A DNA stretch of 64,000 nucleotides from IMGVR_UViG_3300036770_007495:124001-188000, one strand, 5' to 3'. Shown: positions 1 to 61,523, counted from the first letter of the stretch. A program made the numbers and translations. Notes: a model not told the origin generated them from the letters alone.

Positions 1-216
1 CATCATTGTGCCTTGAGAATGAGCACGATGTTGTTTGCCATTGCATACAAATGTTACAATGGCACCATCATCTTTGATGTCTGTTGCATGCAACACATTG
101 TGTCCATCATTGCCTGTATCAGCTTTGGCATCAAAAGCGCCAATGTTGTGAACTTCAATGCGCACTGTTGGTGGTATTGCGTGTTTTTCAAAAAAGAACT
201 GCTTGAATGTTTGCAC
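1..216 (-). CDS. Retropepsin-like/RimK-associated 'ATP-dependent zinc protease' family protein (partial, runs off the window edge)
   Basis: Not in the ORF track. Hand translation from GTG 216: MQTFKQFFFEKHAIPPTVRIEVHNIGAFDAKADTGNDGHNVLHATDIK; AK(A)DTG...LHA matches the family motif AKxDTG...LHA. TAAATA lies 5 nt upstream. Confidence 0.7.
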   Translation of the reverse strand, partial: MQTFKQFFFEKHAIPPTVRIEVHNIGAFDAKADTGNDGHNVLHATDIKDDGAIVTFVCNGKQHRAHSQGTMM

Positions 217-224
217 GCAGTTAT

Positions 225-1280
225 TTATTTTGCAAATTTGATTTTGTATCCACTAGAATCGTAGCATGCAGAGAAAGTTACATCACATGCTCGCAACTCT
301 TTGAACAATCTGATGCAGCTCCATGCATCATACTCTATGCATGCATTGTTGATGATGAATGCTGTACCAAATGGTGCTGTCTTTTTGCCTGGATGCTTAA
401 ACAATACAAACCAGTCATCTTTTTTGCTGCAAATGTATTCAAGAAGTTGAGCTGCTCCTAAAAAATGCATTGCATCTTCTTTGCATTTGATCAAATTCTC
501 GCAGCAAGCAGCACGAGCCATGCAACCAATGCTGTAAGGCAGCATTGAAAAATCATATGGCACTTCATAAATCTTTGATATTTCAGCAAACTGAAATTCA
601 AACTGCATGGCACTAACTACAGGGCGATCTTTTGCAAACTGATTGATGAATTTTTCAATGTTTGCACGATTGCCAATCCATTTGCTTGATTCTCCAATGC
701 GACCGCCATCGCCTTTCAACTCAATGAGGTTGTTGTTGATCATGATGTCGCCTTTGTCAGCTTTGTATCCACCAGCAAGCAACAACAAAGGCAACTCTGC
801 AGGACCAGAATAGCCACGAGTCTTGCCTTCATCAGAAATGGGACGCATTTTTGTCCACACTTCAGCAGTCAATGCACTTGCTTTAAAATCTGCTTTGTAA
901 TATTCACCCAAGAAATCAACAATGTTGGTTCTTTTGAATGCATTTTCTTGCAGATGCTTCAAGAATAATGGAGCAATTGCATCAGTTGATATCGTTTCCA
1001 ACATCTGCAACACACATTCATTGGATACATCACACAAGTAACCAAACAATTTGTTGAGTTCAGTCAATCTATCAATGACTCTGTTGGCAGCAATGAGCTT
1101 GTTGCTTCTTTTGATTAGATTGTCATTGATAACTTTGAAGCATTTGCCAATTTGTGCATGCTGCTTTTGCAGATCAATGTAATGAACAATTATTTCATCC
1201 CACAAACACCCATCAATAACGTATTCCTTTGCATCATCTGTTGCATCATTTGTTGCTACAACGTTGATCATGCAAATCAA
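225..1280 (-). CDS. Hypothetical protein with probable PD-(D/E)XK nuclease-like C-terminal domain
   Basis: 351-aa ORF; segment GPAE...KGDIMINNNLIELKGDGGR resembles an E...GD...ExK restriction-fold active site. Confidence 0.45.
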   Translation of the reverse strand: MICMINVVATNDATDDAKEYVIDGCLWDEIIVHYIDLQKQHAQIGKCFKVINDNLIKRSNKLIAANRVIDRLTELNKLFGYLCDVSNECVLQMLETISTDAIAPLFLKHLQENAFKRTNIVDFLGEYYKADFKASALTAEVWTKMRPISDEGKTRGYSGPAELPLLLLAGGYKADKGDIMINNNLIELKGDGGRIGESSKWIGNRANIEKFINQFAKDRPVVSAMQFEFQFAEISKIYEVPYDFSMLPYSIGCMARAACCENLIKCKEDAMHFLGAAQLLEYICSKKDDWFVLFKHPGKKTAPFGTAFIINNACIEYDAWSCIRLFKELRACDVTFSACYDSSGYKIKFAK

Positions 1281-1687
1281 GGTGCAGTTGACAAATCCTT
1301 GAGTACCGCACTTACTATCTGCTCAACTTGTGCAGGATCTGAGGTGGACAACTGAGAAATTGCAATGTTGATTTGTTTCTCAACATCAGCTGGAATGCTT
1401 GACCTTACTGCTTGAAGTCTGTCACTATCATTGCCTTCAATTGCACCTGCTGTTTGAGCAACAAGTCTAAGCAATTGAATAATGATGGTTCTGAATGTAT
1501 CATAACCGCTCTGAATTTGCTCAGTTGTTTTGTCTGGCTGTTGTGCCATTGCTGCATCAGGTTGAGCAGGAGCTGCTTGTTGATCTTGTGCTGGCGCTTG
1601 CTGCATAGCTACATCAGCAGCTTCATCTTGCTCCATCAAGTAAGTTGCACGAGCTTCTCTAATTACACTGTCAAATATACTTTGCAT
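1277..1687 (-). CDS. Late hypothetical protein, candidate internal head protein
   Basis: TAAATA 6 nt upstream; N-terminus MQSIFDSVIRE..YLME; Q/A/P-rich linker. Confidence 0.6.
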   Translation of the reverse strand: MQSIFDSVIREARATYLMEQDEAADVAMQQAPAQDQQAAPAQPDAAMAQQPDKTTEQIQSGYDTFRTIIIQLLRLVAQTAGAIEGNDSDRLQAVRSSIPADVEKQINIAISQLSTSDPAQVEQIVSAVLKDLSTAP

Positions 1688-1688
1688 T

Positions 1689-2207
1689 TCAGGTATTTAG
1701 GAGCATGCATTTGGTTTTCAAACAGTTGAAGTAGTTGTTGTTGAGAAAAACCAACTTGTATTTGTCAATGAATCTTGTAGCCTTGTCATAGCTATATTTT
1801 ATCTTGTCACCATTGCTGATTTGCATCAAAAATGATGTGCCTTGATTGTTGCTTATGAGTTTGTTGTAATATTCAATAGGTTTGCTGCTGCAATACCATG
1901 TCAAAGGAAGTTTTTTGGTTGCTTCCATGATGAGTTTGTGAATAAACTCCTTGATTTTACCATTTTCATCATCTGGCACCTGGATGCACTCAGAGCTGTA
2001 ATAGAATACTACTTTGCCTTGTGTTATCCCCATTGCAACATCACAACAATGCTTTATTATGCAATGTGTGAGAACCCTCTTAGCATTAGAATCAAACCGT
2101 TTTATATGATACTGTTGCACCAAATCATTGTATTCAATGAGAATGCATTGCAATAGCTCGCAAAAGTTGCAGATGGTTACATTGTAAAGAGGAAAAGAGT
2201 GCAACAT
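1689..2207 (-). CDS. Hypothetical protein
   Basis: 172-aa ORF tightly packed between its neighbours (1-nt gaps). Confidence 0.65.
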   Translation of the reverse strand: MLHSFPLYNVTICNFCELLQCILIEYNDLVQQYHIKRFDSNAKRVLTHCIIKHCCDVAMGITQGKVVFYYSSECIQVPDDENGKIKEFIHKLIMEATKKLPLTWYCSSKPIEYYNKLISNNQGTSFLMQISNGDKIKYSYDKATRFIDKYKLVFLNNNYFNCLKTKCMLLNT

Positions 2208-2208
2208 G

Positions 2209-2622: not shown

Positions 2623-2662
2623 CTTATGCAATTAGTTATTCAATTGCAGAATCTAATGCAAC

Positions 2663-2905
2663 TCACTTTTTCTTACCTTTTTTAACTTTGCCAGTTAAAA
2701 ATACTGTTTCTGGAAAAGTTCTGCGGCCAATTTTCTTCTTTGCACCTAGAATTTTTGGCACTCTCATATCATTGGGCTGCGGAAAATCAGCATTTGGTTC
2801 ACCCATGTTGTTGTAATATTGAGCATTTGAACCAAAGGCAGCAGATGTATTGTCTTCTGCAATGAAATGTTTATAAAAAGTTGCAAAGTTAGTAGCCTTC
2901 TGCAT
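2663..2905 (-). CDS. Small basic late protein, candidate internal head protein
   Basis: Likely start ATG 2905 (MQKATNFATFYKHFIAE); Lys-rich C-terminus; TAAATA at 2917-2922. The longer 5' extension overlaps the uvsY-like gene and is rejected. Confidence 0.65.
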   Translation of the reverse strand: MQKATNFATFYKHFIAEDNTSAAFGSNAQYYNNMGEPNADFPQPNDMRVPKILGAKKKIGRRTFPETVFLTGKVKKGKKK

Positions 2906-2927
2906 AATATATCTTATATTTACGCCA

Positions 2928-3326: not shown

Positions 3327-3341
3327 TGCAGCATGCATTAG

Positions 3342-4796: not shown

Positions 4797-4813
4797 CAAC
4801 CCCACACTATACT
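4786..4813 (+). promoter_or_regulatory. Sigma70-like promoter of gp55
   Basis: TAGAAA-N16-TATACT, 10 nt before ATG 4824. Confidence 0.55.
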
Positions 4814-4823
4814 AACAAACATT

Positions 4824-5306
4824 ATGTCTGTCAACGGAAAAAAACCAACAACAAAATTTAGCAAAGAGCAATTTTATGTAGATCCAGATGTGCTCAAACA
4901 ACAAATTACTGAGTTTTACCAAACAGAAGTTTGTACTACAGCACTTGGTGAAAGCATCAACAAAATTGCTCAGGGGCTAAGTTTCTCACCCAGCTTCATC
5001 AATTACACTTATCGTGATGAAATGATTGGTGATGCCATTGTAAAAATGTATAGTGCACTCAAGCACAAAAAGTACAATGTAAACACAGAAACAAATCCCT
5101 TCTCATACTTTACCACCATTGCATTCCATGCTTTCATCAATCGCATCAAGAAAGAAAAAAAGCATCATGAAGCTGTTGAGCAGTATCGTGCAAATGAATA
5201 CGAGAAGCTTCTGACTGCTGGAGAAATACATGACGAAAAATATCACATCTACACCAAACCCAACTGCGATGATTCAGACGACCAGCAAGATAGCGATCTT
5301 CAGTGA
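4824..5306 (+). CDS. 55: Late-transcription sigma factor gp55
   Basis: FINYTYRDEMIGDA and NPFSYFTTIAFHAFINRIKKEKK motifs; directly upstream of gp47/gp46. Confidence 0.93.
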   Translation: MSVNGKKPTTKFSKEQFYVDPDVLKQQITEFYQTEVCTTALGESINKIAQGLSFSPSFINYTYRDEMIGDAIVKMYSALKHKKYNVNTETNPFSYFTTIAFHAFINRIKKEKKHHEAVEQYRANEYEKLLTAGEIHDEKYHIYTKPNCDDSDDQQDSDLQ

Positions 5307-8125: not shown

Positions 8126-8132
8126 CAACATA

Positions 8133-9353
8133 ATGAATCATTCACCCTTTAGGCAACCTTTCAGAGCACCATTTGCGCCACCTGCCAGCATTGCGCCATT
8201 GGCTTCTGTGCCTGTTGCTGCACCAACAGTCAATACCCCTGAAGAAAATTTGCCTCGTGCATTGCAGTATGCTGCTGATACATCTGGGTGCGGTTTTTGG
8301 AGAATGATCTGGCCAGAGCATATTTTGAATGCCAATCAAAAAGCAATGATCACTACTACAACAGTGATGAATGCAAGTGAGAGCTTTTATGCACCTCTCA
8401 AAGCAATTCGCATTCAAAGACAAGCTACAGCACCTCAGCTTGAGTTTGTCAAATATTTGAAAGCTCTTCAGGGCAAATACGGTTTTCGCATCATTTACGA
8501 AATTGATGATGTTGTATTCCATGAAGATATTCCTGATTACAACAAATTTAAGTTTGCATTTGAATCACAGGAAATCAGAAACAACATCATGCAAATCATC
8601 AATTTGTGTGATGAGGTTACTGTGACCAACGAATTCATGCGCGATTATTTCCGCGAGAAAACAAACAAGCGCGAAATCTCTGTCATTCCAAACTTCCCAC
8701 CTGAATGGTGGATTGGTAGATACTATGATCCAAAGCGCAGCTACAATGCACTCTTGAAACACAAAAAGAAGCCACGCATTCTTTATGCTGGATCTGGTGC
8801 ACACTTTGATGTTGAAAACAAAGCTGGTCAGAAAGATGACTTTGAAGACATTGTAAAGCACATCATTGATACTCGGCACAAGTATACTTGGATTTTTATT
8901 GGTGCTGCTCCAATGCAGTTGATTCCATACATTCAGCGCAATGAGATTGAATTTCATCCATGGCAGCGCTTGTATGACTTTCCCAAGAAGATCTTTGAAT
9001 TGGAAGTGCAGATGCTCATTGCACCTTTGCAAGACAACAACTTCAACAGGTGCAAGAGTGACATCAAGTTCATTGAAGCATGCTGCATGGGATTGCCTGT
9101 TGCATGTCAGGACATGGTCACCTACAAAGATGCGCTCATCAAGTTTAAGACTGGTGAAGAAATGATGCACAAGATTGAAGAAACTCTCAAGCGTACCAAC
9201 AGGTATGTTGAAGATTCATATTCATTGCGCAAAATTGGTGAAAAGAGATTCTTGGAGCGTGATGAAAATCATGACTGCTACTTGGAATTGATTACAACAT
9301 CATATGGCAGCCCTGAGCGCAAAAATCTTTTGAGATACAATGATAGCATTTGA
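8133..9353 (+). CDS. GT-B fold glycosyltransferase
   Basis: SGCGFWRM..P, YEIDD, VIPN and IAPLQDNNFNRCKSDIKFIE..GLP donor-binding motif. Confidence 0.85.
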   Translation: MNHSPFRQPFRAPFAPPASIAPLASVPVAAPTVNTPEENLPRALQYAADTSGCGFWRMIWPEHILNANQKAMITTTTVMNASESFYAPLKAIRIQRQATAPQLEFVKYLKALQGKYGFRIIYEIDDVVFHEDIPDYNKFKFAFESQEIRNNIMQIINLCDEVTVTNEFMRDYFREKTNKREISVIPNFPPEWWIGRYYDPKRSYNALLKHKKKPRILYAGSGAHFDVENKAGQKDDFEDIVKHIIDTRHKYTWIFIGAAPMQLIPYIQRNEIEFHPWQRLYDFPKKIFELEVQMLIAPLQDNNFNRCKSDIKFIEACCMGLPVACQDMVTYKDALIKFKTGEEMMHKIEETLKRTNRYVEDSYSLRKIGEKRFLERDENHDCYLELITTSYGSPERKNLLRYNDSI

Positions 9354-13776: not shown

Positions 13777-14511
13777 ATGAAGAAAATTGTTGTACCTCTT
13801 TCTGGTGGCATGGACTCTGCAGTGCTGCTTTACAAGGCAGTTGAAGAAGCAGATGAAGTGCATTGCATCACATTTGATTATAGTCAGAGGCACAACAGAG
13901 AGTTGCAGTGTGCAGGATGGTTGTATGCAGATGCAAAATACAAAAGCAAGAAGCCAGTATTCTTGAAAAATGTAGATGCATCTTTTATTCGCCATCTTGC
14001 ACCAACTTCTTCTCTCACCAATGATTATATTGAAACACCAGACATCAGAAAGATTGCTGGAGAAGCACAGCCCAAGAGCTATGTACCATTTCGCAATCTG
14101 ATGTTTTTGAGCATTGCATTGTCTCATGCTGAGGCAGTTGGTGCAACAGAGGTGTGGCATGGTGCAACATCAGTTGATTCTTTGGCAGGGTATTGGGATG
14201 CTTCTCCTGAGTTTCTCCCACAGTTAAATGCTGTTGCAGCTCTCAATAGAGAGCACAAGATTCAAGTTGTTGCTCCATTGATTGCTTGTGATAAAGCAGA
14301 CATTGTGAAGATGGGTGTACAGTTGCAAGTACCATTTGCCAAGACATACACTTGCTATTCAGGTGAAGAGCTTGCAGATGCAACAACTCCAAGCAGCAGT
14401 CTCAGAATTCAAGGATTCCTCAAAGCAGGATACAAAGATCCCATCAAATACAAACAGCAAGAACAGATTGACAAGCTGTACATTCAGCACAACTGCCAAG
14501 ACATTGCTTAA
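13777..14511 (+). CDS. queC: QueC-family PP-loop ATPase, atypical (Zn-binding cysteines absent)
   Basis: LSGGMDS PP-loop, FDYSQRH..E, YVPFRNL.FLSIA, APL...KA.IV, TYTCY; YPDC is replaced by YWDA and CGxCxxC by ADATTPSS. Confidence 0.85.
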   Translation: MKKIVVPLSGGMDSAVLLYKAVEEADEVHCITFDYSQRHNRELQCAGWLYADAKYKSKKPVFLKNVDASFIRHLAPTSSLTNDYIETPDIRKIAGEAQPKSYVPFRNLMFLSIALSHAEAVGATEVWHGATSVDSLAGYWDASPEFLPQLNAVAALNREHKIQVVAPLIACDKADIVKMGVQLQVPFAKTYTCYSGEELADATTPSSSLRIQGFLKAGYKDPIKYKQQEQIDKLYIQHNCQDIA

Positions 14512-15518
14512 TAATAGCGATAGCGCTCTTCAATGCGCTGCATGTGCTGCTTGCGAGCAATTCTCATTTGTTCAGCAAGAATAGTTTGCTGTTTAGAATT
14601 GAGTTTGACGCTCTCTTCCAAATCCAATTGAATAGGACGTGCTTCACGAGCTTCTGGTTCTGGAGCAGGAGCAGCAGCTGCTGGAGCAGCAACTTGACCA
14701 AGCTTGTATTTTTCTGATCTATCACCACGCTCCAGCTCAATTTCTGTGACGTGAGATGCAAGAAGTTCATTGCTGACAATGTCACCAACCTTCTTAACAG
14801 CCTTGAGTGCAGAACTGTATTGAGGAGTTCTTGGTACATCCTTCAAACGCACATAGGTAAGCTTGTCACCATCCTGACCCATGAATGAAATGGATGCAAA
14901 TGTTCTCTGATCTTCAGAACGAATTGCTCCCTGTGGCTTGATGTCATTGTTGGTGATGCGCTGCATCAATTCTGCAGGCATTTCTTCTAAATCACCTGCT
15001 GGTGCAGCAGCTGCTGGTTCAGCTTCAACATCACCTTCTTCTGGAACTTCATCTTCAATTTCTTGAGCAATGTCTTGAACAGCAGCACGAACTTGACGTT
15101 CTCTTTGATTGGCAACATTGGCGAGATCCATGCCAAATGTTTCTTGAGCATATTCAATCCAACCTTGAATCCATTCATCTACTGAATTGTATCCTTTTTC
15201 TTGCAATTTTTCAGCAGTCAATTCTCGAAGAATTTCTTTGACCTCTTTGGTAGCAATGACGTTTTCAGCAATTTCAAGTGATTCTGCACAATATCTTGCA
15301 AAAGCAAGTTCTGCTTCACGATAAGATGTGCCTGCAACTTTGCGCAATCTACCATATCGACCTGTAGGAACTTCTTCGCCAATCTTGCCTGCAAAGAATT
15401 TTTTTGCTTCTTTGCCAGGGCCCCATCCAGGAATAGTCTTTTCAACATCTCCAATTTTGACCTTTTCATTCAAAATGTTGTGAGATGCCCAGCCTGGTCT
15501 TTTCAAAATATTGCTCAT
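14508..15518 (-). CDS. Late hypothetical protein, candidate internal head protein
   Basis: TAAATA 5 nt upstream; acidic with A/P-rich linkers; N-terminal segment ends ..ILNE. Confidence 0.75.
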   Translation of the reverse strand: MSNILKRPGWASHNILNEKVKIGDVEKTIPGWGPGKEAKKFFAGKIGEEVPTGRYGRLRKVAGTSYREAELAFARYCAESLEIAENVIATKEVKEILRELTAEKLQEKGYNSVDEWIQGWIEYAQETFGMDLANVANQRERQVRAAVQDIAQEIEDEVPEEGDVEAEPAAAAPAGDLEEMPAELMQRITNNDIKPQGAIRSEDQRTFASISFMGQDGDKLTYVRLKDVPRTPQYSSALKAVKKVGDIVSNELLASHVTEIELERGDRSEKYKLGQVAAPAAAAPAPEPEAREARPIQLDLEESVKLNSKQQTILAEQMRIARKQHMQRIEERYRYY

Positions 15519-15549
15519 GTTTTTATTTATTTATCTCACAACATAATTG

Positions 15550-15577
15550 TTGAAAAATGAATGGCTTAATGTATATT
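15550..15577 (+). promoter_or_regulatory. Sigma70-like promoter of the GATase gene
   Basis: TTGAAA-N16-TATATT, 7 nt before ATG 15585. Confidence 0.6.
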
Positions 15578-15584
15578 GTTGAAT

Positions 15585-16286
15585 ATGTGTGCCATTTTTG
15601 GATCATTTGACCGCAGCATGTACGATGTTTTGTTTGAATCAAACAATGCAAGAGGCAATTTTGCTTACAGTCATTGTTTTCTCAACTCAAAAAGTGCTGC
15701 ACCTTTTCACATCAAAAAGTTCAATAAAATTCCAAAAATCAATGATATTACAGATGTGAGTTCAAATGTGTATCATTTTGGTCATTTTCAAGCACCCACC
15801 AGTTCAGTAAGAACATGGAAAGAAGAAACAAGTCACCCATTTGAGCATGGTGATTGGATTGTTGCTCACAATGGCGTTCTCACCAACTTTAAAGAGCTTG
15901 CTGATGAATATGCGCCCATGCTCAACATCAAAGTTGATAGTGCAATCATTCCAATGATGCTTGCAAATCATACATTTGAAATTGATGCCAAGCAAAAAGA
16001 TGCAGCAATGATTGAAAATGCTGTAAAAACTGTTTTGGAAAAACTCAAAGGCACATTTGCATTGTGGATCATCAATCGCAAGCACAAACGAGCTTTTGTT
16101 GCGCGTCAAGGCAGCACTCTTTTTGCAAATGCTAGCACCGGGAGCTTTTGTTCTGTTGAATGCAAAAGTGAAGGGTGGAGTGAACTATCAGAAGGTTACA
16201 TCTACGAAGTGCTCTTCAAAGCAAAGTGCCTTGCTCCATTTGCTAAGTTTAGCATTGACTCTCCATTCTTGTTTATTCAAGAGTAA
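15585..16286 (+). CDS. Stand-alone class II (Ntn) glutamine amidotransferase
   Basis: Starts M-C-A-I-F-G (catalytic Cys1); RG, GHFQAPT, HPF, VAHNG.LTN..EL, VDS, LKGTFA, AR motifs. Confidence 0.88.
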   Translation: MCAIFGSFDRSMYDVLFESNNARGNFAYSHCFLNSKSAAPFHIKKFNKIPKINDITDVSSNVYHFGHFQAPTSSVRTWKEETSHPFEHGDWIVAHNGVLTNFKELADEYAPMLNIKVDSAIIPMMLANHTFEIDAKQKDAAMIENAVKTVLEKLKGTFALWIINRKHKRAFVARQGSTLFANASTGSFCSVECKSEGWSELSEGYIYEVLFKAKCLAPFAKFSIDSPFLFIQE

Positions 16287-16629
16287 GGAGATATCTGAGA
16301 TGATTCATTGCTCCAATCATCTCATCTCTAATGTTGAGCAAATCAGAATGAGATTGAATGTCTTCAACTTCATTGGTGAGCATTGAAATTGCATTGGTGA
16401 GAATCTTTTCAAGGTCAGTGGTTTCATCCAAATTTCTCAAATCCAGGCTCTGTGCAAATGCAACGCGGCCATAAATGCCCTGATAAGTTTCAACAAATGT
16501 ATCCAACAAATCGCCCAAAGAATCATAGAATTTGCCAAAAGCTTTGTGACGAGCATATGATTTGGTTTGCCAATGATAAATTCTAATCTGAAGTTGCAGA
16601 TAAATGAGCTGAGCAATAATTCTTGACAT
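16273..16629 (-). CDS. Ferritin/Dps-like four-helix protein (DUF5856-like)
   Basis: IYHWQTKSYARHKA..FY..L..LLDTFVE.YQG.YGR ... NIRDEM...YLLTL; TAAATA 5 nt before ATG 16629. Confidence 0.8.
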   Translation of the reverse strand: MSRIIAQLIYLQLQIRIYHWQTKSYARHKAFGKFYDSLGDLLDTFVETYQGIYGRVAFAQSLDLRNLDETTDLEKILTNAISMLTNEVEDIQSHSDLLNIRDEMIGAMNHLRYLLTLE

Positions 16630-16639
16630 ACATGTATTT

Positions 16640-16954
16640 ATGAGCGAAATAAGAAAATTTGAAACTGGTGCACACAGAAATGATGATGCTAACAAACCCA
16701 AAATGTCATTGATTCCGCATGCTGAATTGATGCGAGTGCTTGCACGATATCGAGCAGGTGCTGATAAATTTGGAGCACACAATTGGAAAAATGGCATGCA
16801 ATTGTCTGAATTGTATGATAGTGCTCAGCGACATTTGACCAGCTGGTACATGAAAGATCAGAGTGAGGATCATGCTGCAGCTGCAGTTTGGAATATTCTT
16901 TGTGCCATGTGGATGGAACAAAACAAACCTCAAATGGATGACAGAATTTTATGA
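16640..16954 (+). CDS. DUF5664-like (dATP/dGTP diphosphohydrolase N-terminal domain) protein
   Basis: FETGA.R....KP..SLIP, GA.K.G..NW..G, SA.RHL..W, EDH.AA..WN. Confidence 0.8.
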   Translation: MSEIRKFETGAHRNDDANKPKMSLIPHAELMRVLARYRAGADKFGAHNWKNGMQLSELYDSAQRHLTSWYMKDQSEDHAAAAVWNILCAMWMEQNKPQMDDRIL

Positions 16955-17628
16955 AAACAACGTTGTATGTGAGTTGCACACAAAAAAGCAATGAAGAGGA
17001 TACTTTGATTAATCAGAGTGCGTACAATACAGGCTTCTTGGGTGAAGATGATACACTGCACATTGTTACCAACAATCGCAGAGGTCTCAGCAAAGTTTAC
17101 AATGAGTTCATCAATGAAAAAATTGCCAAAGAGCATGACCGCATCGTTTTCGTTCATGATGATGTCTACATTGATGATGTCATGATCAATGTGAAGCTCA
17201 ATGAAGCAATGTATGGTGAATCAAAGTTTGACATTGTGGGTCTTGCTGGAACACGCAACCCACAAATTAAACACCCTGCATTGTGGCACATCATGGGCAA
17301 GCGCGAAGATCATCGCGGATATGCTGGTCACATTTTTGGCAAACACAAAGTCATGACTGGGTTTGGACCCACTCCAGATCGTGTTGCCATCATTGATGGT
17401 TTGTTTGTTGCAGTCAATGTTGCTCGTGCACTTGAAACTGGATGGAGGTGGAATGAAAACTTTGATTTTCATCATTATGACATTGCAAGCTGCATTGATG
17501 CAAATGCCAAAGGCATGCGCATTGGAGTATGGCCCATCAATGTGTTTCATGCATCTCCTGGACTTGCAAGCCTAGAAGATGTTGCATGGAGCAAGAGCAA
17601 TGAAAAATTCTTACAGTTGTATTCCTGA
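16951..17628 (+). CDS. GT-A fold glycosyltransferase
   Basis: GLSKVYN, FVHDDV (DxD-like), GLAG, IDGLF, FHHYD; ATGA overlap with the DUF5664-like gene. Confidence 0.85.
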   Translation: MKTTLYVSCTQKSNEEDTLINQSAYNTGFLGEDDTLHIVTNNRRGLSKVYNEFINEKIAKEHDRIVFVHDDVYIDDVMINVKLNEAMYGESKFDIVGLAGTRNPQIKHPALWHIMGKREDHRGYAGHIFGKHKVMTGFGPTPDRVAIIDGLFVAVNVARALETGWRWNENFDFHHYDIASCIDANAKGMRIGVWPINVFHASPGLASLEDVAWSKSNEKFLQLYS

Positions 17629-25023: not shown

Positions 25024-26094
25024 ATGCAATTGCCTGAAGCATATGTAGTCAACAAATTCTACCAATTTGCTGGTGCACCAAAATACAACAGGTACACCAA
25101 GACATATCAAGCATCTTGCCCCATTTGCAGAGAAGGCAAAAGTTGGCTCAAAAAGCGCAGATGCTACTACATTCCAAATCGCAACAATGTGTTTTGTCAC
25201 AACTGCGGTTGGAATGGTACAGCATACAAATGGGTCAAAGAAGTAACTGGATTGAGTTACAATGAAATTATGCTGGATAGTCTCAACTATGAGACTTTTG
25301 ATTGCAACAAATCAAACGCAGAAGAGACTGCAGCATTTGAGGTAGCACCAACACTGCCAGGAGATTGCATCAATTTGTTTGATGAGCAGCAAGTCAAGTT
25401 TTACAAAGACAATGACATTGTTGCAAAAGCAGTGCAATACATTGAGCATCGCAAATTGCATCAAGCCATCAACAAGCCAGATGCATTGTATTTGTGCTTT
25501 GATAGAGAACAGAAAACTGGCCACGACAAGCGCATTGTGATTCCATTTGTTGATTGCAACGGCAAAATCATCTTTTATCAATCACGCAGCTTCTTGCAAA
25601 ATCCTGATGATGTGTTGCCAAAATACCTCTCCAAAGCAGGTGGAGACCGATCATTGTTTAACATCAACAAGCTTGATGCTTCTGCTACAACAATGTTTGT
25701 ATTTGAAGGTCCGTTCAATGCATTCTTCTGCAAAAACTCTGTTGCTGTAGGCGGCATTCAAGAACGAAGCATGATGCTGTTCTCCAACAAACAACAAGAA
25801 CAGATTGATGTTTATTGCAAATTCTATGATGTTGTGTGGGTGCTTGATTCACAATGGATTGACAATGCAAGCTACCTCAAAACACAAAAGCTCATTGAAA
25901 TGAAGCAAAAGGTGTTCATTTGGCCCAAATTGATTGGAATGAAATGCAAAGACTTCAATGATGTTTGCATGGCATTAAATGCCAAAGAAATACCCCCTCA
26001 TTTTATTCTCAAGAACACTTATGAGGGGGTACAGGCTCAACTGATGCTGTCAAGCATGCGTCAAAACAACAGCATGCCAATCAGTGCAGCTTAA
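25024..26094 (+). CDS. 61: gp61 DNA primase
   Basis: CPIC...CHNC Zn ribbon, RIVIPF, Q.R, KY, TOPRIM EGP, KD.ND. Confidence 0.92.
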   Translation: MQLPEAYVVNKFYQFAGAPKYNRYTKTYQASCPICREGKSWLKKRRCYYIPNRNNVFCHNCGWNGTAYKWVKEVTGLSYNEIMLDSLNYETFDCNKSNAEETAAFEVAPTLPGDCINLFDEQQVKFYKDNDIVAKAVQYIEHRKLHQAINKPDALYLCFDREQKTGHDKRIVIPFVDCNGKIIFYQSRSFLQNPDDVLPKYLSKAGGDRSLFNINKLDASATTMFVFEGPFNAFFCKNSVAVGGIQERSMMLFSNKQQEQIDVYCKFYDVVWVLDSQWIDNASYLKTQKLIEMKQKVFIWPKLIGMKCKDFNDVCMALNAKEIPPHFILKNTYEGVQAQLMLSSMRQNNSMPISAA

Positions 26095-26546
26095 ACAAAG
26101 CGATATTTTGGCTCATTGCTGGTTGCAAGATAACCCTTGAAGGTTTCTGCAAGAGCAGAGATTTCTTTGGCAACACGAGCAATCTTCTTGGCTTCAGCAG
26201 TGCGCATCTTGTCAAAAATGGTGTCAGGTACAGCTTTCTTGAGCTGCATCTGAATGGAATTGCCATCAGTTCCGTTGAGATAATCAACCATGCCATCCAA
26301 CTGCTCAATCCATCCTTGCAAATTCTTGATCATTTGCATTTCACGCTGAGCGGCATGCTGCAAAATCTGACGATCTTCTGGGCTGATGTCTGAAGCACCG
26401 AGATCAGCAGCATTGCTACCCTCATCTCCTGCTCTAAAATCAGGTTGTGCGGGTGCTGCATTGTCGCTAGCCTGCGCAGGTGTTGGAAGACCTTCATCTT
26501 GCTCCAACAGAGTTGAGAAAACATTGCTGAAAATATTTTGTGACAT
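26091..26546 (-). CDS. Late hypothetical protein, candidate internal head protein
   Basis: TAAATA 5 nt upstream; N-terminus MSQNIFSNVFSTLLE. Confidence 0.75.
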   Translation of the reverse strand: MSQNIFSNVFSTLLEQDEGLPTPAQASDNAAPAQPDFRAGDEGSNAADLGASDISPEDRQILQHAAQREMQMIKNLQGWIEQLDGMVDYLNGTDGNSIQMQLKKAVPDTIFDKMRTAEAKKIARVAKEISALAETFKGYLATSNEPKYRFV

Positions 26547-50396: not shown

Positions 50397-50855
50397 TCAA
50401 CGGTACCAGGAATCATTACGCTCAAAAGCATCTTGAAGAGTTGATTCAGCAATTTCCATTTCTTCAAAAGTTACATCCTCAGTAACATCTACAGCATCTT
50501 TGTGTTCATCACCAACTTCAAAAATGCCTGTTACTTCCAAATCTTCAATTTCAGGCCAACGACTTCCAATGTATCCATTTGATGCATTTGGACGCTCTTC
50601 TTCTATGGTGTATGTAACTTCTCCTTCAAGCACATAATCACCTGGTCTGTTTGGAAATTTCACAGTAATGTCATCACCCTTCCATGTCTGCTGAACGAAT
50701 CTAAAATCATCATCAAGATCACCATCATAGTCACGTTCTTCTTCCTGCTCCGCAGCAGAAGCAGAATGATCGTACTGCTCAACGTTTTCTTCACGCTTCT
50801 GCTTTTCTTTGGTTTCATTGTATACAACTCGATTGTAGAGTCTGTTAAAATTCAT
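50397..50855 (-). CDS. Acidic late protein, candidate internal head protein
   Basis: TAAATA 5 nt upstream; N-terminus MNFNRLYNRVVYNE. Confidence 0.75.
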   Translation of the reverse strand: MNFNRLYNRVVYNETKEKQKREENVEQYDHSASAAEQEEERDYDGDLDDDFRFVQQTWKGDDITVKFPNRPGDYVLEGEVTYTIEEERPNASNGYIGSRWPEIEDLEVTGIFEVGDEHKDAVDVTEDVTFEEMEIAESTLQDAFERNDSWYR

Positions 50856-51373: not shown

Positions 51374-51784
51374 ATGAGCTTTCCAACATTCAAAACATTT
51401 TTTGAAACTACTGCAACTGATCCGACTGTTAATAAAGCTGTCAATGGATATGGTGATGGAAATGCTGCAGGCAAAATGAGAACCAGCCGCATAACTGGCA
51501 CCAGCAAAAACCCAAATTTGCTTGCTCAAAGCTCCATCAACACTCAAACTGCAACTAAAAACAACAAGATTGACAAAGTTGCAAATAATCCTGCAGCACA
51601 AGAAGTTTTGAATGATCTTGATTTGCAAGAAATTCAAAACACTCACGGCATTGATTTGAATCAAATGCAAAATGATCAGCCCAAGCAAGTCAATGCAAAA
51701 ATTAATGCAGCAGTTGTAAAGTCTGTTGATGCAACAGGCAAGCCAATTTACAGATTGATTCACTACAAGCCAATTCAGCAATGA
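51374..51784 (+). CDS. Hypothetical protein, candidate internal head protein
   Basis: N-terminus MSFPTFKTFFE; ATGA overlap with gp14. Confidence 0.7.
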   Translation: MSFPTFKTFFETTATDPTVNKAVNGYGDGNAAGKMRTSRITGTSKNPNLLAQSSINTQTATKNNKIDKVANNPAAQEVLNDLDLQEIQNTHGIDLNQMQNDQPKQVNAKINAAVVKSVDATGKPIYRLIHYKPIQQ

Positions 51785-53777: not shown

Positions 53778-53800
53778 GTTTTCAATGTTCTCTTTTACTC

Positions 53801-54607
53801 TCAGTCAAAGATTGATTTGCCAGGAGTGAGCTTGCTGTTGACTTTCATGCTGCCTTTGCTCATGAGAGTCTTGCCCTTGTCACCAAGTGCCTTTGGTTCT
53901 GCTTCAAGATCAACGTTAACAGAGGCATCAGCCTTGCCGCCAGTCTTGCCTGTTACAGTACCGCCCACTTTCATCTTGCCCTTGCCCATGAGATCATGGC
54001 CTTTGTTGCCAATTGGCTTTGGAGAAGGCTCAACTACAACGCTTTCTGGAAATGCTCCTTCATCTTCGTCTTCATCATCCATCATCTCATCACCGAGATC
54101 AGCGCCAAGATCTTCTGCGCCCAATTCTTCATCGGTCATTTCATCTTCCATGCCGCCTTCAAGCTGGCCCATGAGTGCATCATGAAGCTTCTGTGCAAGT
54201 TCACGTGGAAGAGAAATTGTGATTTCTGTTTCATCACCCATGTCATCAGAAACATCAACATCAAGAGCTTCAAGGTCTTGGTTTTCAGTATCCATGTCAG
54301 ATGGGTTGTCCATCACTTCTTCGTAGAGAGTATCAAAAAGAGATTTTTGTGTCATACCGGTATTTAGGGCCACTGCCTGTGCTTTTTCAACTCCTAAAGA
54401 AAATTTTTGAGGCTCAAACAAATTATTTTTCTTGCCCTTCTTGGAGTCCAGTGCTGGTACAAAGCCTGAAGCATTGGCAGGGCCACCTTTTTTGTCCATG
54501 TCCATGATTTCAGCGCCCATGGTTGGCTTTTTAATTTTCATTGTTGGCAGTGGCTTGCCGCCTTTGCCGCCTTTGAGTTTGATTTTGACTGTAGATTTGC
54601 GTTGCAT
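53801..54607 (-). CDS. Late low-complexity protein (basic N-terminus, acidic core, two C-terminal repeats); possible prohead core/internal protein with an internal isoform from 54355
   Basis: TAAATA 5 nt before ATG 54607 and again 5 nt before in-frame ATG 54355. Confidence 0.75.
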   Translation of the reverse strand: MQRKSTVKIKLKGGKGGKPLPTMKIKKPTMGAEIMDMDKKGGPANASGFVPALDSKKGKKNNLFEPQKFSLGVEKAQAVALNTGMTQKSLFDTLYEEVMDNPSDMDTENQDLEALDVDVSDDMGDETEITISLPRELAQKLHDALMGQLEGGMEDEMTDEELGAEDLGADLGDEMMDDEDEDEGAFPESVVVEPSPKPIGNKGHDLMGKGKMKVGGTVTGKTGGKADASVNVDLEAEPKALGDKGKTLMSKGSMKVNSKLTPGKSIFD

Positions 54608-54612
54608 AGCAT

Positions 54613-54633: not shown

Positions 54634-54641
54634 AAAGCACT

Positions 54642-56935: not shown

Positions 56936-56954
56936 ATTTGTGCCTGGATTTTCA

Positions 56955-56960
56955 TAAATA
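56955..56960 (+). promoter_or_regulatory. T4-type late promoter TAAATA (representative of 24 copies listed in findings)
   Basis: cATAAATA-tctac-ATG of gp18; gp55 is encoded in the window. Confidence 0.85.
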
Positions 56961-56965
56961 TCTAC

Positions 56966-59608
56966 ATGGCATCAAGAATTATCAACTCTCCAGGGGTTCA
57001 AATCAATGAAATCGATGAATCAGCAATTCAGGCAAATGTTTTTGGTACTGATGTATTGATCACTGGTTTCGCAAGCAAAGGCCCAACAGATGAAGTCATC
57101 AGTGTTTCTTCACTTTCTGAATTTGAACAGATTTTCGGCACACCAACCAATGCTGCAGAGCGTTATTTCTACTACTCTGTAAAGCCTCTGTTTGGAACAG
57201 GTGCTAATTTGCTGCTCAGCCGCTTGCCATATGGCGGCGGAAATGGTGATGGCTTTGGTTCACAATACAGCGCAGTAGTTTACCCTGTTGTTGCTGTATC
57301 TGGTAACCCAATTGATTTTAATCTTGCTGATGCTACTGCAACAGCTACAGCAGACATTAATCTTGCAACAGGTGCAGTATCATCTGTAGCAGTAGTACTG
57401 TCTGGTCAATATTATGCTGTTGCTCCAACAATCACAGTATCTGCTCCTCAGACACCTGGTACAACTGCAACATTTACAGCAAACATTACCCTTGCAGGCG
57501 CTGTATCTTCTCTTACTACTACTCAAGCAGGATCTGGATATACTTCTGCACCAACCATAACAATTGCTGCACCAAGCTACAACAACATTGGTGGTATTCT
57601 GCCAACACTTGATAGTGCAAGTGTTGATGCATATGTTCTTGGCAAGCCTCTTCACTTTACTCTTACCAAGGCTCAATATTTGTCATGCATCAATGGTGAA
57701 GCATTTGTGTGGAACAAAACTCCAACAACAGCAGGTGTTGTACAAAACATTGCAAGCATCAGCGATTTCGGCAAAGCTGGCGTTGTAATCTTCAACAAAG
57801 CACAAACAACCATCAATGACAAGTATGAAGGTTATTACATTGGCATGGTTGACAACACCAATGCAAATCCTGCAACTCAGTTTGATGGCATTGTTACAGC
57901 AACAACAGTTAACGTTGCTGCTCCAAACGTTGGCAGCAAGGATACAACAACACCTGTTCCTGCAACTCGCCTCAACTTTGCATTGTCGGGTAGCAATGCA
58001 TCCAATGGCACAATGTCGCAGGCATTTGAAAATGCTGCTTCATTCAACATTGGCACAAATCAATTCAACGATTACCTCACACTTGGAGTTGTGAAGCTTC
58101 GTCAGAGCATCTTCTCACCAGACACAATCAAGCTTGATTATGTTCTTGAAGAGAAGTTTGTTGCAAGCCTTGACTTCTACCGTCAGCGCACACCAGAAAA
58201 TGGTGGTCCAATCACTTCTGCATACATTGGCAATGAAGTTGATAATGGCTCACGCAACATCACCATCATGGTCAACGACTTTGTGTCAAATCGCAATGGC
58301 GCAACCTGGATTGGTCTTGATGGCTTGCCAAGCAAGAGTGTTAGAATGCTCAGCCGCGAGCTTGAAGGCTTGCTTACTGATGCAACAACATTTGCAAGTG
58401 TCTCTGGCACAATCGGCATTACACCTGGTGCATTCAATGCTGCAAAAACATCATTTGCAACTAATCTCAATGGTTATGCTGACGACTTGCTTGCACTTGG
58501 TGCATATGTAAATCCAGCACCTGCTGATAAGACCATTGGTAGCTTGCCAAACAAGATTGATCGCATCCTTCAGTTGGTTGAAAATGATGAATTGTTTGAC
58601 ATTGACATCTCTGTTGAAGCTGGTCTTGGTACCATCTATGCAACAACTTGCGCAGCACGCACAAGTTACTATGATGACACCTTGATGAATTCAACATTGC
58701 AGCAAGCTCTTGGTTACTTGCAGACAACTCTCAATTACACCGCACCATCTGATGATACATTGGACTTGAGAGGCAACTACAACACCATCTTCAGCAAGTT
58801 TGCTGACTTTGCACGTGACAGACTGGATCACATCTTCATTGCTGATCCAATTCGTCACATCTTGGTGCAGGGCAACAATTCCAAGACACTCAATGACAAT
58901 TCCAAGAGCTGGTCACAGCATGTGTTCTCACCATTGCGTCACCAGTTTGAGCTTGCCAACACCAGCTATGCAGCAGCATATGCAAACTGGGCACGAGTCA
59001 ATGATGGCTTCTCTCAGACAAATGTGTGGGTGCCATTCTCTGGCACAGTTGCATCAGACTTTGCTCGTTCCGACAGAGACTTTGCATACTGGGCAGCACC
59101 AGCAGGCTTCCGCCGCGGTTTGGTGAGCGAAGTGGATGACATTGCAATTGCTCCTAACCAGAAGCAGCGCGATGACTTGTACAAGTTCAACCTCAATCCA
59201 ATCACACAGTTTGTGCGCGAAGGCATTGTAATCTTTGGTCAGAAGACTCTCAACCGCATTCCAAGTGCATTTGACCGAGTCAACGTCCGCCGCTTGTTCA
59301 TCTTGCTTGAGAAGCAGACCAAGGCAATTGCTCGCTACTATGTGTTTGAGCCAAACACCTTGTACACTCGCACACGTCTTGTGGATGACTTGACACCAAA
59401 CTTTGAAGCTGCTAAAACAGCAACAATCAATCAGGGCATCTACGACTACATCATTGTTTGCGATGACAGAAACAACCCACCATCTGTCATTGATGCAAAC
59501 GAGCTTGTGGTTGACATTTACATCAAGCCAGTTCGCACTGCAGAGTTCATCTTGGTGAACTTCCATGCAACAAGAACAAGTGCCAACTTCCAAGAAATCT
59601 TGAGATAA
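56966..59608 (+). CDS. 18: Tail sheath protein gp18
   Basis: SPGVQINEID, G.A.KGP, F..IFG.P, WAAPAG..RG, NPI, GQKT, SAFDRVNVRRLF, FEPN, IKP.R.AEFI. Confidence 0.97.
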   Translation: MASRIINSPGVQINEIDESAIQANVFGTDVLITGFASKGPTDEVISVSSLSEFEQIFGTPTNAAERYFYYSVKPLFGTGANLLLSRLPYGGGNGDGFGSQYSAVVYPVVAVSGNPIDFNLADATATATADINLATGAVSSVAVVLSGQYYAVAPTITVSAPQTPGTTATFTANITLAGAVSSLTTTQAGSGYTSAPTITIAAPSYNNIGGILPTLDSASVDAYVLGKPLHFTLTKAQYLSCINGEAFVWNKTPTTAGVVQNIASISDFGKAGVVIFNKAQTTINDKYEGYYIGMVDNTNANPATQFDGIVTATTVNVAAPNVGSKDTTTPVPATRLNFALSGSNASNGTMSQAFENAASFNIGTNQFNDYLTLGVVKLRQSIFSPDTIKLDYVLEEKFVASLDFYRQRTPENGGPITSAYIGNEVDNGSRNITIMVNDFVSNRNGATWIGLDGLPSKSVRMLSRELEGLLTDATTFASVSGTIGITPGAFNAAKTSFATNLNGYADDLLALGAYVNPAPADKTIGSLPNKIDRILQLVENDELFDIDISVEAGLGTIYATTCAARTSYYDDTLMNSTLQQALGYLQTTLNYTAPSDDTLDLRGNYNTIFSKFADFARDRLDHIFIADPIRHILVQGNNSKTLNDNSKSWSQHVFSPLRHQFELANTSYAAAYANWARVNDGFSQTNVWVPFSGTVASDFARSDRDFAYWAAPAGFRRGLVSEVDDIAIAPNQKQRDDLYKFNLNPITQFVREGIVIFGQKTLNRIPSAFDRVNVRRLFILLEKQTKAIARYYVFEPNTLYTRTRLVDDLTPNFEAAKTATINQGIYDYIIVCDDRNNPPSVIDANELVVDIYIKPVRTAEFILVNFHATRTSANFQEILR

Positions 59609-59625
59609 GACACAAAAACAAAGAG

Positions 59626-59654
59626 GAGTGCAGCGCAAGCTGCACTCTTTTTTT
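59626..59654 (+). terminator. Intrinsic terminator after gp18
   Basis: GAGTGCAGC-GCAA-GCTGCACTC-TTTTTTT. Confidence 0.92.
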
Positions 59655-59675
59655 GTTTAAACCATAAATACTAAC

Positions 59676-60170
59676 ATGAACGAAGACCTAAAAGAGCTGC
59701 AAAACATCTATGAAAGTGCTGTCAATGAAGGCATTTTGAATAGAATTGGTGCCAACATTGCAGGTGCAGTTGGGACTGCAGGTGGTGCACTCAAGGGAGC
59801 ATATTATGGTGCAACAGGCAATGTGCAAGGTGCAGCTGATGCAGCATTAAAAGCAAAAAATGCTAAATTTGATTCATACAAAAAAGCTGCTGATGCAAAG
59901 TTAGAAAAAGTTTTTAACGAAGTGGTGACCGATCTTACAAAGCTCAATTTGGTAGATCAAGCAAGAATGAAGCCATACATTGATGGATTCAAACAAAACC
60001 TTGCAACTTCTTTTACTCAATTTTTGCAGGGATTGACTGCTACAGTTGCACAAGCTCCAGCAGCCCCCACTCAAACCACACAGCAAACTACTCAAACCAT
60101 CCCACCATCTCCACCAGCAAGTACTACTGCTACGCCTCCTGCTGCATCACAGCCGGTTGGTCCTATGTAA
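59676..60170 (+). CDS. Late protein with Gly/Ala-rich segment, candidate internal head protein
   Basis: TAAATA 5 nt upstream; MNEDLKELQNIYESAVNE followed by GILNRIGANIAGAVGTAGG; P/T-rich tail. Confidence 0.75.
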   Translation: MNEDLKELQNIYESAVNEGILNRIGANIAGAVGTAGGALKGAYYGATGNVQGAADAALKAKNAKFDSYKKAADAKLEKVFNEVVTDLTKLNLVDQARMKPYIDGFKQNLATSFTQFLQGLTATVAQAPAAPTQTTQQTTQTIPPSPPASTTATPPAASQPVGPM

Positions 60171-60186
60171 TGCATTTGCATAATTT

Positions 60187-60627
60187 ATGGCTCACAAAGA
60201 GTTTAAACAAGGCGTTTACAAGCCCATCAACAGGCAGAAATACATTGGTGATAAACTGCCTTTTTATAGATCAGGTTATGAGCTAAAATTCATGCGATGG
60301 GCTGATGCTAACCCCAATGTTTTGAAGTGGGGAAGTGAAAGCATCATTGTCCCTTACAAGAGCCCCATTGATGGTAAAATGCATCGCTATTTTGTAGATA
60401 ATGTGGTCATCATCAAAGAAGGAGAAAACATCAAAAAATATCTCATTGAGATCAAACCACACAAACAAACACAGCCGCCAACTGCTCATGGCAACAAAAA
60501 ACAGACCACCATTTTGTATGAGCAAGCTACATATGTCATCAATCAAGCCAAATGGGAAGCAGCAAAGAAGTGGTGCAAAGATCATGAATGGGAGTTTCTC
60601 ATCTTAACAGAGAAGCATTTGCCATAA
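60187..60627 (+). CDS. 4: gp4 head completion nuclease (TnsA-like)
   Basis: G.YKP.N..KY.GD, YRS.YE..FM.W.D.NP.V..W.SE, HRYF.D, EIKP..QT, NQAKW.AA, ILTE. Confidence 0.92.
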   Translation: MAHKEFKQGVYKPINRQKYIGDKLPFYRSGYELKFMRWADANPNVLKWGSESIIVPYKSPIDGKMHRYFVDNVVIIKEGENIKKYLIEIKPHKQTQPPTAHGNKKQTTILYEQATYVINQAKWEAAKKWCKDHEWEFLILTEKHLP

Positions 60628-60635
60628 ATACTATG

Positions 60636-61523
60636 ATGCAAGATTTTAAAACATTTTACAGACAGCACTTAATTGAAGAATCATTCAAACAAGATCTTGC
60701 AATGATGGCACTTGCTGTATCACTTGCACTCACAACTGGCATTGGGCTGCATAAAATTGGTTTCATACAAGACAGGGACAGCGTTGAATATGCATTGAGA
60801 AATGCACAAGACATGGGATACAATGTTCAGGAGATTGTACAGCAATCTAAACAGCCAGAGATTCAACAAAAAGCAAAAGAAATTCTGCAACAAAAACAAG
60901 ATGACAAGGCTGAACAGATGTACAAAAAAGCTGTTGAGCCGCCTGCTCAGCCTCTACAACCTTCTGTTTTGAAGCCTGCTAAAGAGACTGAACAAGAATT
61001 TCTCAGAGCAGCCATGGAATACATCAAAGAAAATGAGCTTGGTCAAGCAGGCATAGAATATCATAAACCATACCGAGATCACAAAGGCAAACCCACCATT
61101 GGCATTGGTCATTTGATTACACCCAAAGAGCAAAGCAAGGGCATTTTTAAGAAAGGCATTTCTGAAGATCAGGTTTATGAGTTGTTTACCAAAGATATTC
61201 AAACCAAGCTGCAAACAGCACGCAGAATATTTCCCAAGTATGATGAATTTCCGCTTGATTTGAAAATCAAGTTGTTGGATGGAATTTTCCGTGGTGATGT
61301 ATCAGGATCACCCACCACCATCAAGCTCATCAATGCAGGCAAATGGGAAAAAGCGGCAAATGAGTTTCTTGACAACAAAGAATACAAAGAAGCAGTTAAA
61401 AAAGGATATGGTACTGGGCCACGCATGAAGAAAATTGCAGATGCAATCAAAGCAATGGGTAATAAACAGCAGCCAGAAGCAACAAAACCTAAATTGCAAC
61501 CAGAAACAACGCCGTTTTATTAA
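60636..61523 (+). CDS. GH24-like lysozyme with N-terminal leader and hydrophobic anchor
   Basis: E...PY.D..G.PTIG.GHL, TI.LIN.G.W..AA.EF, GPR; TAAATA 5 nt before ATG 60636. Confidence 0.85.
   Translation: MQDFKTFYRQHLIEESFKQDLAMMALAVSLALTTGIGLHKIGFIQDRDSVEYALRNAQDMGYNVQEIVQQSKQPEIQQKAKEILQQKQDDKAEQMYKKAVEPPAQPLQPSVLKPAKETEQEFLRAAMEYIKENELGQAGIEYHKPYRDHKGKPTIGIGHLITPKEQSKGIFKKGISEDQVYELFTKDIQTKLQTARRIFPKYDEFPLDLKIKLLDGIFRGDVSGSPTTIKLINAGKWEKAANEFLDNKEYKEAVKKGYGTGPRMKKIADAIKAMGNKQQPEATKPKLQPETTPFY

Follow-up and report, generated by a model that had tools for sequence, protein, structure and literature searches.

Candidate T4-type capsid-targeting leaders on unrelated late proteins of an uncultured T4-like phage

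Late proteins with similar N-termini

The 64,000-nucleotide stretch IMGVR_UViG_3300036770_007495:124001-188000, here called the window, encodes ten late proteins that share a short N-terminus ending in glutamate (the leader), and the question that it raises is whether these leaders are capsid-targeting propeptides like those of the phage T4 internal proteins (IPs). The window comprises bases 124001-188000 of a single metagenome-assembled contig of 224,703 bp, and the ten proteins are numbered 1 to 10 along it. The resemblance to T4 was pointed out in an original prediction, and all ten of the N-termini listed there were reproduced by translation, as was the spacing of the late promoter element TAAATA, which lies upstream of all ten genes: 5-6 nt before the start codon in eight of them, 11 nt in the gene for protein 3 and 21 nt in that for protein 7. 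Two corrections are needed. Protein 1 starts with GTG, and its open reading frame (ORF) runs past the left edge of the window (genome 123815-124216), while protein 8, with its start at 54355 on the minus strand, sits in frame within a longer ORF starting at 54607. The mature parts had been described as otherwise unrelated, and a comparison of 30 of them with each other gave one weak pair. The figure of about ten such proteins is right for the window and too low for the genome, where the set numbers approximately 25-30.

We consider it probable that the leaders are T4-type capsid-targeting propeptides, carried by some 25-30 mostly orphan, unrelated late proteins of which ten are encoded in the window. 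The interpretation put forward in the original prediction is, to this extent, partly supported. Conservation of the leaders among orthologues is the strongest line of evidence for it.

Conservation of the leaders among orthologues

The T4 targeting sequence consists of residues 1-10 of IPIII; targeting is reported to depend on residues 4 and 7, and processing on residues 8 and 10 (PMC9026906). The leader of protein 1 (a 133-residue ORF, window 1..216 on the minus strand and continuing past the left edge, with TAAATA-N5-GTG) has ten residues ending F-F-E, and in the same register it shares with IPIII M1, T3, an aromatic residue at 4, F7, a hydrophobic residue at 8, and E10. A set of 15 homologues (53-91% identity) shows no change at T3, F4 or the catalytic D-T-G, conservation of at least 90% at F7, and an aromatic residue at position 8 in 14 of them (Glu in the other one), while positions 5, 6 and 9 vary. 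The glutamate is E10 in eleven homologues, E9 followed by Q10 in two, and present at both positions in two. The conserved positions thus correspond to the targeting (4, 7) and processing (8, 10) residues of T4. The mature part matches PF05618 (E 4e-7), a retropepsin-like aspartic peptidase of the RloA/DUF785 family. In the AlphaFold2 (AF2) model, which has a predicted local distance difference test (pLDDT) score of 87, the leader forms a separate short helix of low confidence ahead of a confidently predicted domain, and Foldseek aligns the fold with the RloA/DUF785 aspartic peptidases 2pma, 9g58 and 9g59 at template modelling (TM) scores of 0.69-0.74. The mature part of protein 1 is therefore predicted to have a retropepsin fold with a catalytic Asp-Thr-Gly.

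Protein 4 (window 14508..15518, minus strand), a conserved Glu-rich protein of 336 residues, has an 18-residue leader ending I-L-N-E. Its 36 homologues span 34-96% identity, and in all of them M1, I4, L5, P8, G9, W10 and E18 are invariant; the residue at -2 from E18 stays hydrophobic and the residue at -1 varies. Protein 5 (window 26091..26546, minus strand; 151 residues) consists of a 15-residue leader ending L-L-E, a hypervariable acidic linker, and a conserved helical hairpin as its C-terminal domain, with residues 10-52 disordered and helices at residues 56-142 in the AF2 model. All 21 homologues (31-93% identity) have F6, F10 and a hydrophobic-x-Glu site, the last with small shifts of register.

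Protein 10 (window 60636..61523, plus strand; 295 residues) has a leader of 14-15 residues ending L-I-E-E, a hydrophobic segment rich in Ala, Gly, Ser and Thr at approximately residues 21-40, and a lysozyme domain at residues 143-248 (PF00959, E 4e-8), with PHROGs matches to endolysins and tail lysozymes. Its orthologues likewise lie between the gp4-like and tube genes. They carry three different leaders, all of which end in hydrophobic-x-Glu followed by Ser and the membrane segment. These orthologues were found in a scan anchored on the tube gene, the scan of IMG/VR with the single protein having given lysozyme-domain matches only.

Head-maturation machinery

The genome is predicted to encode a T4-type head-maturation machinery. 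Peptidase_S77 (PF03420, E 9e-36), Gp23 and Portal_T4 were all detected, and the Peptidase_S77 prohead protease (genome 82134-82799) shares 40% identity with T4 gp21, including the catalytic His85 (in ELNHP) and Ser140 (in SSR). T4 gp21 is reported to cut at L/I-x-Glu (PMC9026906), and the T4 propeptides have a length of 10-20 residues (PMC5694885). In the capsid protein of the phage studied here, the last Glu ahead of the conserved core falls in C-L-N-E. Relatives have C-L-R-E, C-I-Q-E or C-I-K-E at this point, and the capsid propeptide site is therefore a conserved hydrophobic-x-Glu.

The scaffold protein is encoded at genome 82957-83841, and between its gene and that for the protease the gene caller missed an ORF of 48 residues (L006:7809-7955, plus strand). 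Relatives have ORFs of 47-64 residues near the same spot, with late promoters and a shared motif N-Y-A-x-A-H/N-K-Y-L, and this ORF possibly encodes a small prohead-core protein.

Enrichment of leaders among late genes

The profile scan suggested with the original prediction was attempted using a right-aligned position matrix from the ten leaders, iterated over the proteome. It was overfitted and missed obvious members, and was discarded; late enrichment was seen instead with two rules, both of which were fixed in advance after the matrix had been dropped. The first rule calls for a Glu at residues 9-18, a hydrophobic residue at -2 and three or more hydrophobic residues among the seven that precede the Glu, with no Pro or Gly in that stretch. 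The second, taken from the T4 register, calls for hydrophobic residues at -6, -3 and -2 relative to the Glu.

The first rule is passed by 20 of the 58 ORFs with late promoters and by 34 of the 232 other genes. The suggestion that early genes might be equally rich in leaders was not borne out, since only 12 of the 102 early-block genes pass (Fisher p=0.0009 against the late genes). Internal Met windows pass at a rate of 7.9%, and when residues 2-22 of the late ORFs are shuffled, 6.3 +/- 2.2 of the 58 pass (maximum 14 in 500 shuffles). The second rule is passed by eight of the 58 late ORFs, against 1.6 +/- 1.2 expected. The summed excess over expectation amounts to approximately 25 proteins genome-wide. 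Real propeptide N-termini from the head region of T4 (NC_000866) pass the first rule in four cases out of five (Alt, gp24, gp22 and gp68), and the fifth, gp21, fails by a single Pro.

The leaders are 9-19 residues long across the set, and 10-18 in the ten of the window. Leu or Ile is found at -2 from the Glu in proteins 2, 3, 4, 5, 8, 9 and 10. A hydrophobic or aromatic residue at both of the IPIII targeting positions, 4 and 7, is found in register only in proteins 1 and 10; in the other leaders, aromatic residues with an i/i+3-4 spacing occur in shifted registers. The leaders have no DNA-level identity with one another, and their recent duplication, or exchange of leader DNA as cassettes, was therefore rejected as a source of the resemblance.

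Other leader proteins in the window

Protein 2 (window 1277..1687, minus strand, TAAATA-N6-ATG) is an acidic orphan of 136 residues with an isoelectric point (pI) of 4.2. Its 11-residue leader ends I-R-E, and a second site, Y-L-M-E, follows seven residues on. No Pfam or PHROGs family was found for it, and the IMG/VR scan gave only a relative of 94% identity, which is too close to test divergence. Protein 3 (window 2663..2905, minus strand) is a basic orphan of 80 residues (pI 10.1) with a 17-residue leader ending F-I-A-E, the last four residues of the T4 sequence. Protein 6 (window 50397..50855, minus strand, TAAATA-N5-ATG) has 152 residues, of which 30% are Asp or Glu, and a 14-residue leader ending Y-N-E. 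Protein 7 (window 51374..51784, plus strand) is a basic orphan of 136 residues with an 11-residue leader ending F-F-E, for which the single-protein scan of IMG/VR gave only relatives of 91-98% identity.

Protein 8 (window 53801..54355, minus strand) is an acidic product of 184 residues, with a leader of 12-13 residues ending L-Y-E-E. The ORF of 268 residues in which it is nested (53801-54607, minus strand) has a start with its own TAAATA-N5-ATG, as does protein 8 itself. The extra 84 codons of the long form are rich in Lys and Gly, and their differences from a relative of 90% identity number 7, 4 and 24 at the first, second and third codon positions. Most of these fall at the third position, which shows that the long form is coding and that purifying selection acts on the extra codons. 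The same relative also keeps the internal TAAATA. The single-protein scan of IMG/VR gave only close relatives (90-98%).

Protein 9 (window 59676..60170, plus strand) is an orphan of 164 residues, rich in Ala and Gly, in a slot between the sheath and gp4-like genes, and its leader has two candidate sites, I-Y-E (13) and V-N-E (18). The single-protein scan of IMG/VR gave no relatives. A metatranscriptome strain of approximately 98% identity lacks the gene altogether: position 59654 is joined to 60187 (an indel of window 59655-60186), with 17 other bases including a TAAATA at the joint, so that the sheath gene is followed straight away by the gp4-like gene. Other relatives have an ORF of 585-606 residues in this slot.

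The wider set of leader proteins

Outside the window, about ten adjacent leader-bearing genes lie on both strands at genome 50.7-60.4 kb (L004:5760-15371, genome 50760-60371). Their products have 90-802 residues and none has a Pfam family, an arrangement that resembles the hyperplastic internal-protein locus of T4. Other leader genes are dispersed, among them those for two tiny basic Cys-containing proteins of 93 and 55 residues beside the capsid gene (L006:10461-10742, plus strand, and L006:11879-12046, minus strand), both with a pI above 10, which have all of their Glu in the leader and none in the mature part. Orthologues across the clade keep the form of the leader and the layout, and these two proteins are candidates for IP-like, DNA-associated head proteins.

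A further late protein, of 338 residues (genome 59068-60084, L004:14068-15084, plus strand), has a 15-residue leader ending V-N-E, which is followed directly by the consensus twin-arginine motif S-T-R-R-S-F-L-K and a hydrophobic stretch. Its neighbours in a protein language model are proteins with signals for twin-arginine translocation (Tat), and a protein cut after the Glu would begin with a Tat signal. Relatives carry additional late ORFs with similar leaders that have no homologue in this genome.

Searches of 20 candidates against Pfam and PHROGs gave three domains only, the rest being nearly all orphans. The recognisable domains are the retropepsin-like protease, the lysozyme, and a weak match to a flavin mononucleotide (FMN) reductase. 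Look-ups of three candidates in the ESM Atlas gave no function.

Proposed function and alternative explanations

The head would be built as in T4, with a portal, a scaffold core, a gp23-type shell, and an S77 protease with hydrophobic-x-Glu as its cleavage site, the cut falling after the Glu. The leaders, which are rich in Phe, Tyr, Leu and Ile and end in that same pattern, would bind to the scaffolding core during prohead assembly, with the result that the attached protein becomes enclosed. The prohead protease would then cut off the leader after the Glu, and the mature protein would be kept in the head together with the DNA; when the next cell is infected, at least some of these proteins would go out with the DNA. 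The set would be a mixed one, with small and very basic IP-like proteins, enzymes (the retropepsin-like peptidase and the membrane-anchored lysozyme), and acidic, Glu-rich proteins for which a role as core components, degraded during maturation, is an alternative. We infer core binding, cleavage, packaging, ejection into the next host, and function by analogy with T4. By the same analogy, the leader proteins may include the anti-defence or takeover effectors envisaged in the original prediction.

A number of observations weigh against this proposal. The phage is uncultured and is known from metagenome sequence. The motif is short and degenerate, and some 8-12% of any N-termini pass the first rule, so that one or two of the ten leaders may be chance matches. 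The rule also passes the sheath, a baseplate hub and an N-terminal-nucleophile (GATase) amidotransferase, and individual leader calls are therefore not safe. T4 is reported to prefer Leu or Ile at -2, but several leaders have Phe, Tyr or Val there (Phe or Tyr in proteins 1, 6 and 7). In hydrophobic moment the leaders exceed controls by a narrow margin only (p=0.045), and because this measure barely separates the two we do not claim a strongly amphipathic helix. The two representative homologues of protein 6 keep E14, but the residue at -2 changes from Y to H to A, which makes this the weakest member of the ten. The leader of protein 8 may be internal to the long form, or belong to an internal start. 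Finally, in protein 10 and in the Tat-motif protein (genome 59068), the leader runs straight into a membrane or Tat export signal.

One alternative is that the leaders are real and most of the proteins are accessories of the prohead core or scaffold, like gp67, gp68 and gp22 of T4, that are degraded or expelled and do not serve as cargo. The T4 core proteins gp22 and gp68 have the same kind of N-terminus, and a few members are well described in this way. Protein 4, which is conserved clade-wide, has 4.1 hydrophobic-x-Glu sites per 100 residues (2.3 in the proteome, 6.5 in the scaffold protein) and the acidic protein 6 has 4.35; being Glu-rich with many internal sites, both look like core components, and for protein 4 in particular a prohead-core role seems likelier than that of a cargo effector. 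Protein 5, with a predicted disordered acidic linker and helical hairpin that resemble a scaffold protein, is perhaps better grouped with the scaffold-type proteins too, as perhaps is protein 6. However, many candidates have few or no internal hydrophobic-x-Glu sites (none at all in five small proteins, with two proteins lacking any Glu outside the leader), proteins 1 and 10 are predicted to be folded enzymes, and protein 9 is present or absent between strains, which would be odd for a core assembly factor. The explanation thus fits a few members, and as an account of most of the set we regard it as rather unlikely. A further possibility is that the resemblance is compositional, arising by chance from AT-rich N-termini of leaderless genes (with codons for Phe, Lys, Asn, Tyr and Ile) and from common short helices. 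The background pass rate and the overfitting of the position matrix are both in keeping with this, as are promoters that abut the ATG, the lack of Shine-Dalgarno sites, and an AT content of 67% in the first 15 codons of the candidates compared with 62% in other late genes. Yet such a leader is absent from the remaining leaderless late genes (sheath, tube, portal, fibres) and from the early genes, which are leaderless too, and the enrichment is more than six standard deviations above shuffles of the very same residues. Moreover, F4 and F7 of protein 1, F6 and F10 of protein 5, and the Glu are kept across orthologues while their neighbours vary, and the absence of shared DNA identity means that the leaders are not recent copies. 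Composition arising from leaderless translation is unlikely to be the main cause, and we consider a chance origin distinctly improbable.

For members with a hydrophobic or Tat segment, the N-terminus might be the cytoplasmic n-region of an export signal or signal anchor, with protein 10 a lysin of the signal-anchor-release type and the genome 59068 protein a Tat substrate. The order of elements in protein 10 (leader, hydrophobic segment, lysozyme domain), the twin-arginine motif and Tat-signal neighbours of the other protein, and the plain Tat signals used by two late DUF1501 proteins are all compatible with this, but it would cover just two or three members. In addition, the orthologues of protein 10 keep the hydrophobic-x-Glu and the following Ser while the remainder of the leader changes, and ejection proteins of phage SPN3US with a membrane segment at the mature N-terminus are known (PMC5694885). 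A better endolysin candidate is also available, in the form of a late Amidase_2 gene beside a small membrane protein (L001:4641-5768, minus strand), which is the likely lysis cassette. In the gp5-like baseplate hub (805 residues, L006:16977-19394, plus strand) an OB domain but no lysozyme domain was detected, which leaves room for an ejected wall hydrolase. With a hub of this kind and a separate Amidase_2 candidate, protein 10 could be that hydrolase, although it may instead be a signal-anchored lysin. It was also considered as the endolysin of the phage, a role not adopted as the principal one in view of the Amidase_2 candidate and of the conserved hydrophobic-x-Glu-Ser, which it leaves unexplained. 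Export signals are, in our judgement, a very improbable explanation of the leaders.

The capsid-targeting explanation, which we prefer, can be taken further. One short tag might load more than 10% of the gene products (at least 25 proteins), and for some of these, removal of the leader might unmask a second address label, a Tat signal or membrane anchor, that leads to re-export in the next host. We look on this as a long shot. If true, the injected genome 59068 protein or protein 10 would be re-exported to the periplasm or membrane by the Tat or insertion machinery of the host, and protein 1, as an injected retropepsin-like protease, would add another new type of phage effector.

Comparison with known systems

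The likeness to T4 IPI, IPII, IPIII and Alt extends to a short N-terminal propeptide (10-20 residues) that ends in hydrophobic-x-Glu, a gp21-type S77 protease, unrelated mature parts, late expression, and several small and basic members. The differences are that there are approximately 25-30 candidates here and a handful in T4, that those described here are known from sequence alone, and that their leaders vary in length (9-19) and in sequence, with Phe, Tyr or Val often replacing the Leu or Ile of T4. Pfam and PHROGs searches found no homology between the mature parts and the T4 IPs or Alt. The core and vertex proteins gp22, gp67, gp68 and gp24 of T4 have N-termini of the same style (NC_000866), and like proteins 4 and 6 they combine an acidic, Glu-rich composition with numerous internal sites; in contrast to these, most candidates have few internal sites, and none is similar in sequence.

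In the giant phages phiKZ, 201phi2-1 and SPN3US, 8-19 head-internal proteins are cut after Glu by a diverged gp21 homologue (PMC9026906, PMC5694885). These phages thus also have many processed head proteins, some of which are enzymes and one of which has a membrane segment at its mature N-terminus. They differ in that their propeptides are mostly longer than 100 residues and are cut at S/A-x-Glu, whereas the present phage has leaders of T4 length and is a true T4-like phage with gp23, gp20 and gp21 (40%). A short terminal peptide also suffices to load unrelated proteins into the HK97-fold shell of encapsulins, although that cargo-loading peptide is usually C-terminal, is uncleaved, and involves no delivery to another cell.

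Loading of varied proteins by a tag has already been proposed as general for T4-like phages (PMC9026906), and for this reason we claim no new mechanism. The mechanism is known from T4, and what is notable here is the scale and some unusual clients. If the leaders work as in T4, they would permit a listing, from sequence, of the proteins that widespread freshwater and subsurface T4-like phages carry into their hosts, and would indicate a tag system able to grow to dozens of clients, which is relevant to the loading of capsids with tagged proteins. Proteins that enter the cell with the DNA act ahead of all phage gene expression; T4 examples are IPI*, an anti-restriction protein, and the ADP-ribosyltransferase Alt. 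The orphan leader proteins are therefore reasonable first candidates for new early-acting functions.

Late promoters and the layout of transcripts

A gp55-like late sigma factor (window 4824-5306, plus strand; phrog_234, E 1e-25) makes TAAATA credible as a late promoter. The form TAAATA-N5-6-ATG/GTG precedes 58 ORFs genome-wide, including those for the sheath (window 56950-56968), tube (window 61529-61547), portal and protease, and is thus not specific to the leader genes. To judge by these promoters, the leader genes would be expressed late, as the head genes are. Metatranscriptome RNA contigs matched structural genes and not leader candidates.

Early genes have the arrangement GTTGAC-N17-TATAAT-N6-ATG, with 14 clear cases (for example L001:12853-12900). 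The regions upstream of the 286 called genes showed no enrichment of Shine-Dalgarno sites. Since the promoters abut the ATG and Shine-Dalgarno sites are lacking, most transcripts should begin at or beside the start codon, which suggests a genome-wide layout of leaderless mRNA in a T4-like phage.

Source lineage and possible host

A Megablast search with an 8.5-kb stretch gave no GenBank phage match, and the best GenBank phage matches to the sheath protein are only approximately 35% identical, with no annotated close relative. The top holder of the DNA is a subsurface metagenome, and near-identical sequence is present in many freshwater, lake and soil metagenomes. Relatives of the major capsid protein are encoded on at least 595 IMG/VR contigs, and the best 80 of these are 70-92% identical. 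With no close relative in GenBank and many holders among metagenomes and IMG/VR contigs, the phage belongs to a distant T4-like myovirus lineage that is uncultured yet widespread. The genome also encodes a T4-type large terminase, UvsY, a UvsW-like helicase, a gp32-like single-stranded DNA-binding protein and a primase.

Just upstream of the head module are two DUF1501 genes and one PSCyt2/PSD1 (DUF1549/DUF1553) gene, all three with late promoters (L005:12465-13721, L005:14846-16633 and L006:1638-2873). Signals of the Tat type occur in both DUF1501 genes, and a hydrophobic N-terminus that resembles a signal in the PSCyt2/PSD1 gene. Planctomycetota and Verrucomicrobiota are the groups in which these families are typically found, and the genes hint at a host from one of them.

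Protein 4 is flanked by genes for QueC, a class-II glutamine amidotransferase and a glycosyltransferase (window 13777-17628), and a second glycosyltransferase is encoded at window 8133-9353. These genes probably serve DNA modification, either of the 7-deazaguanine type or with sugars.

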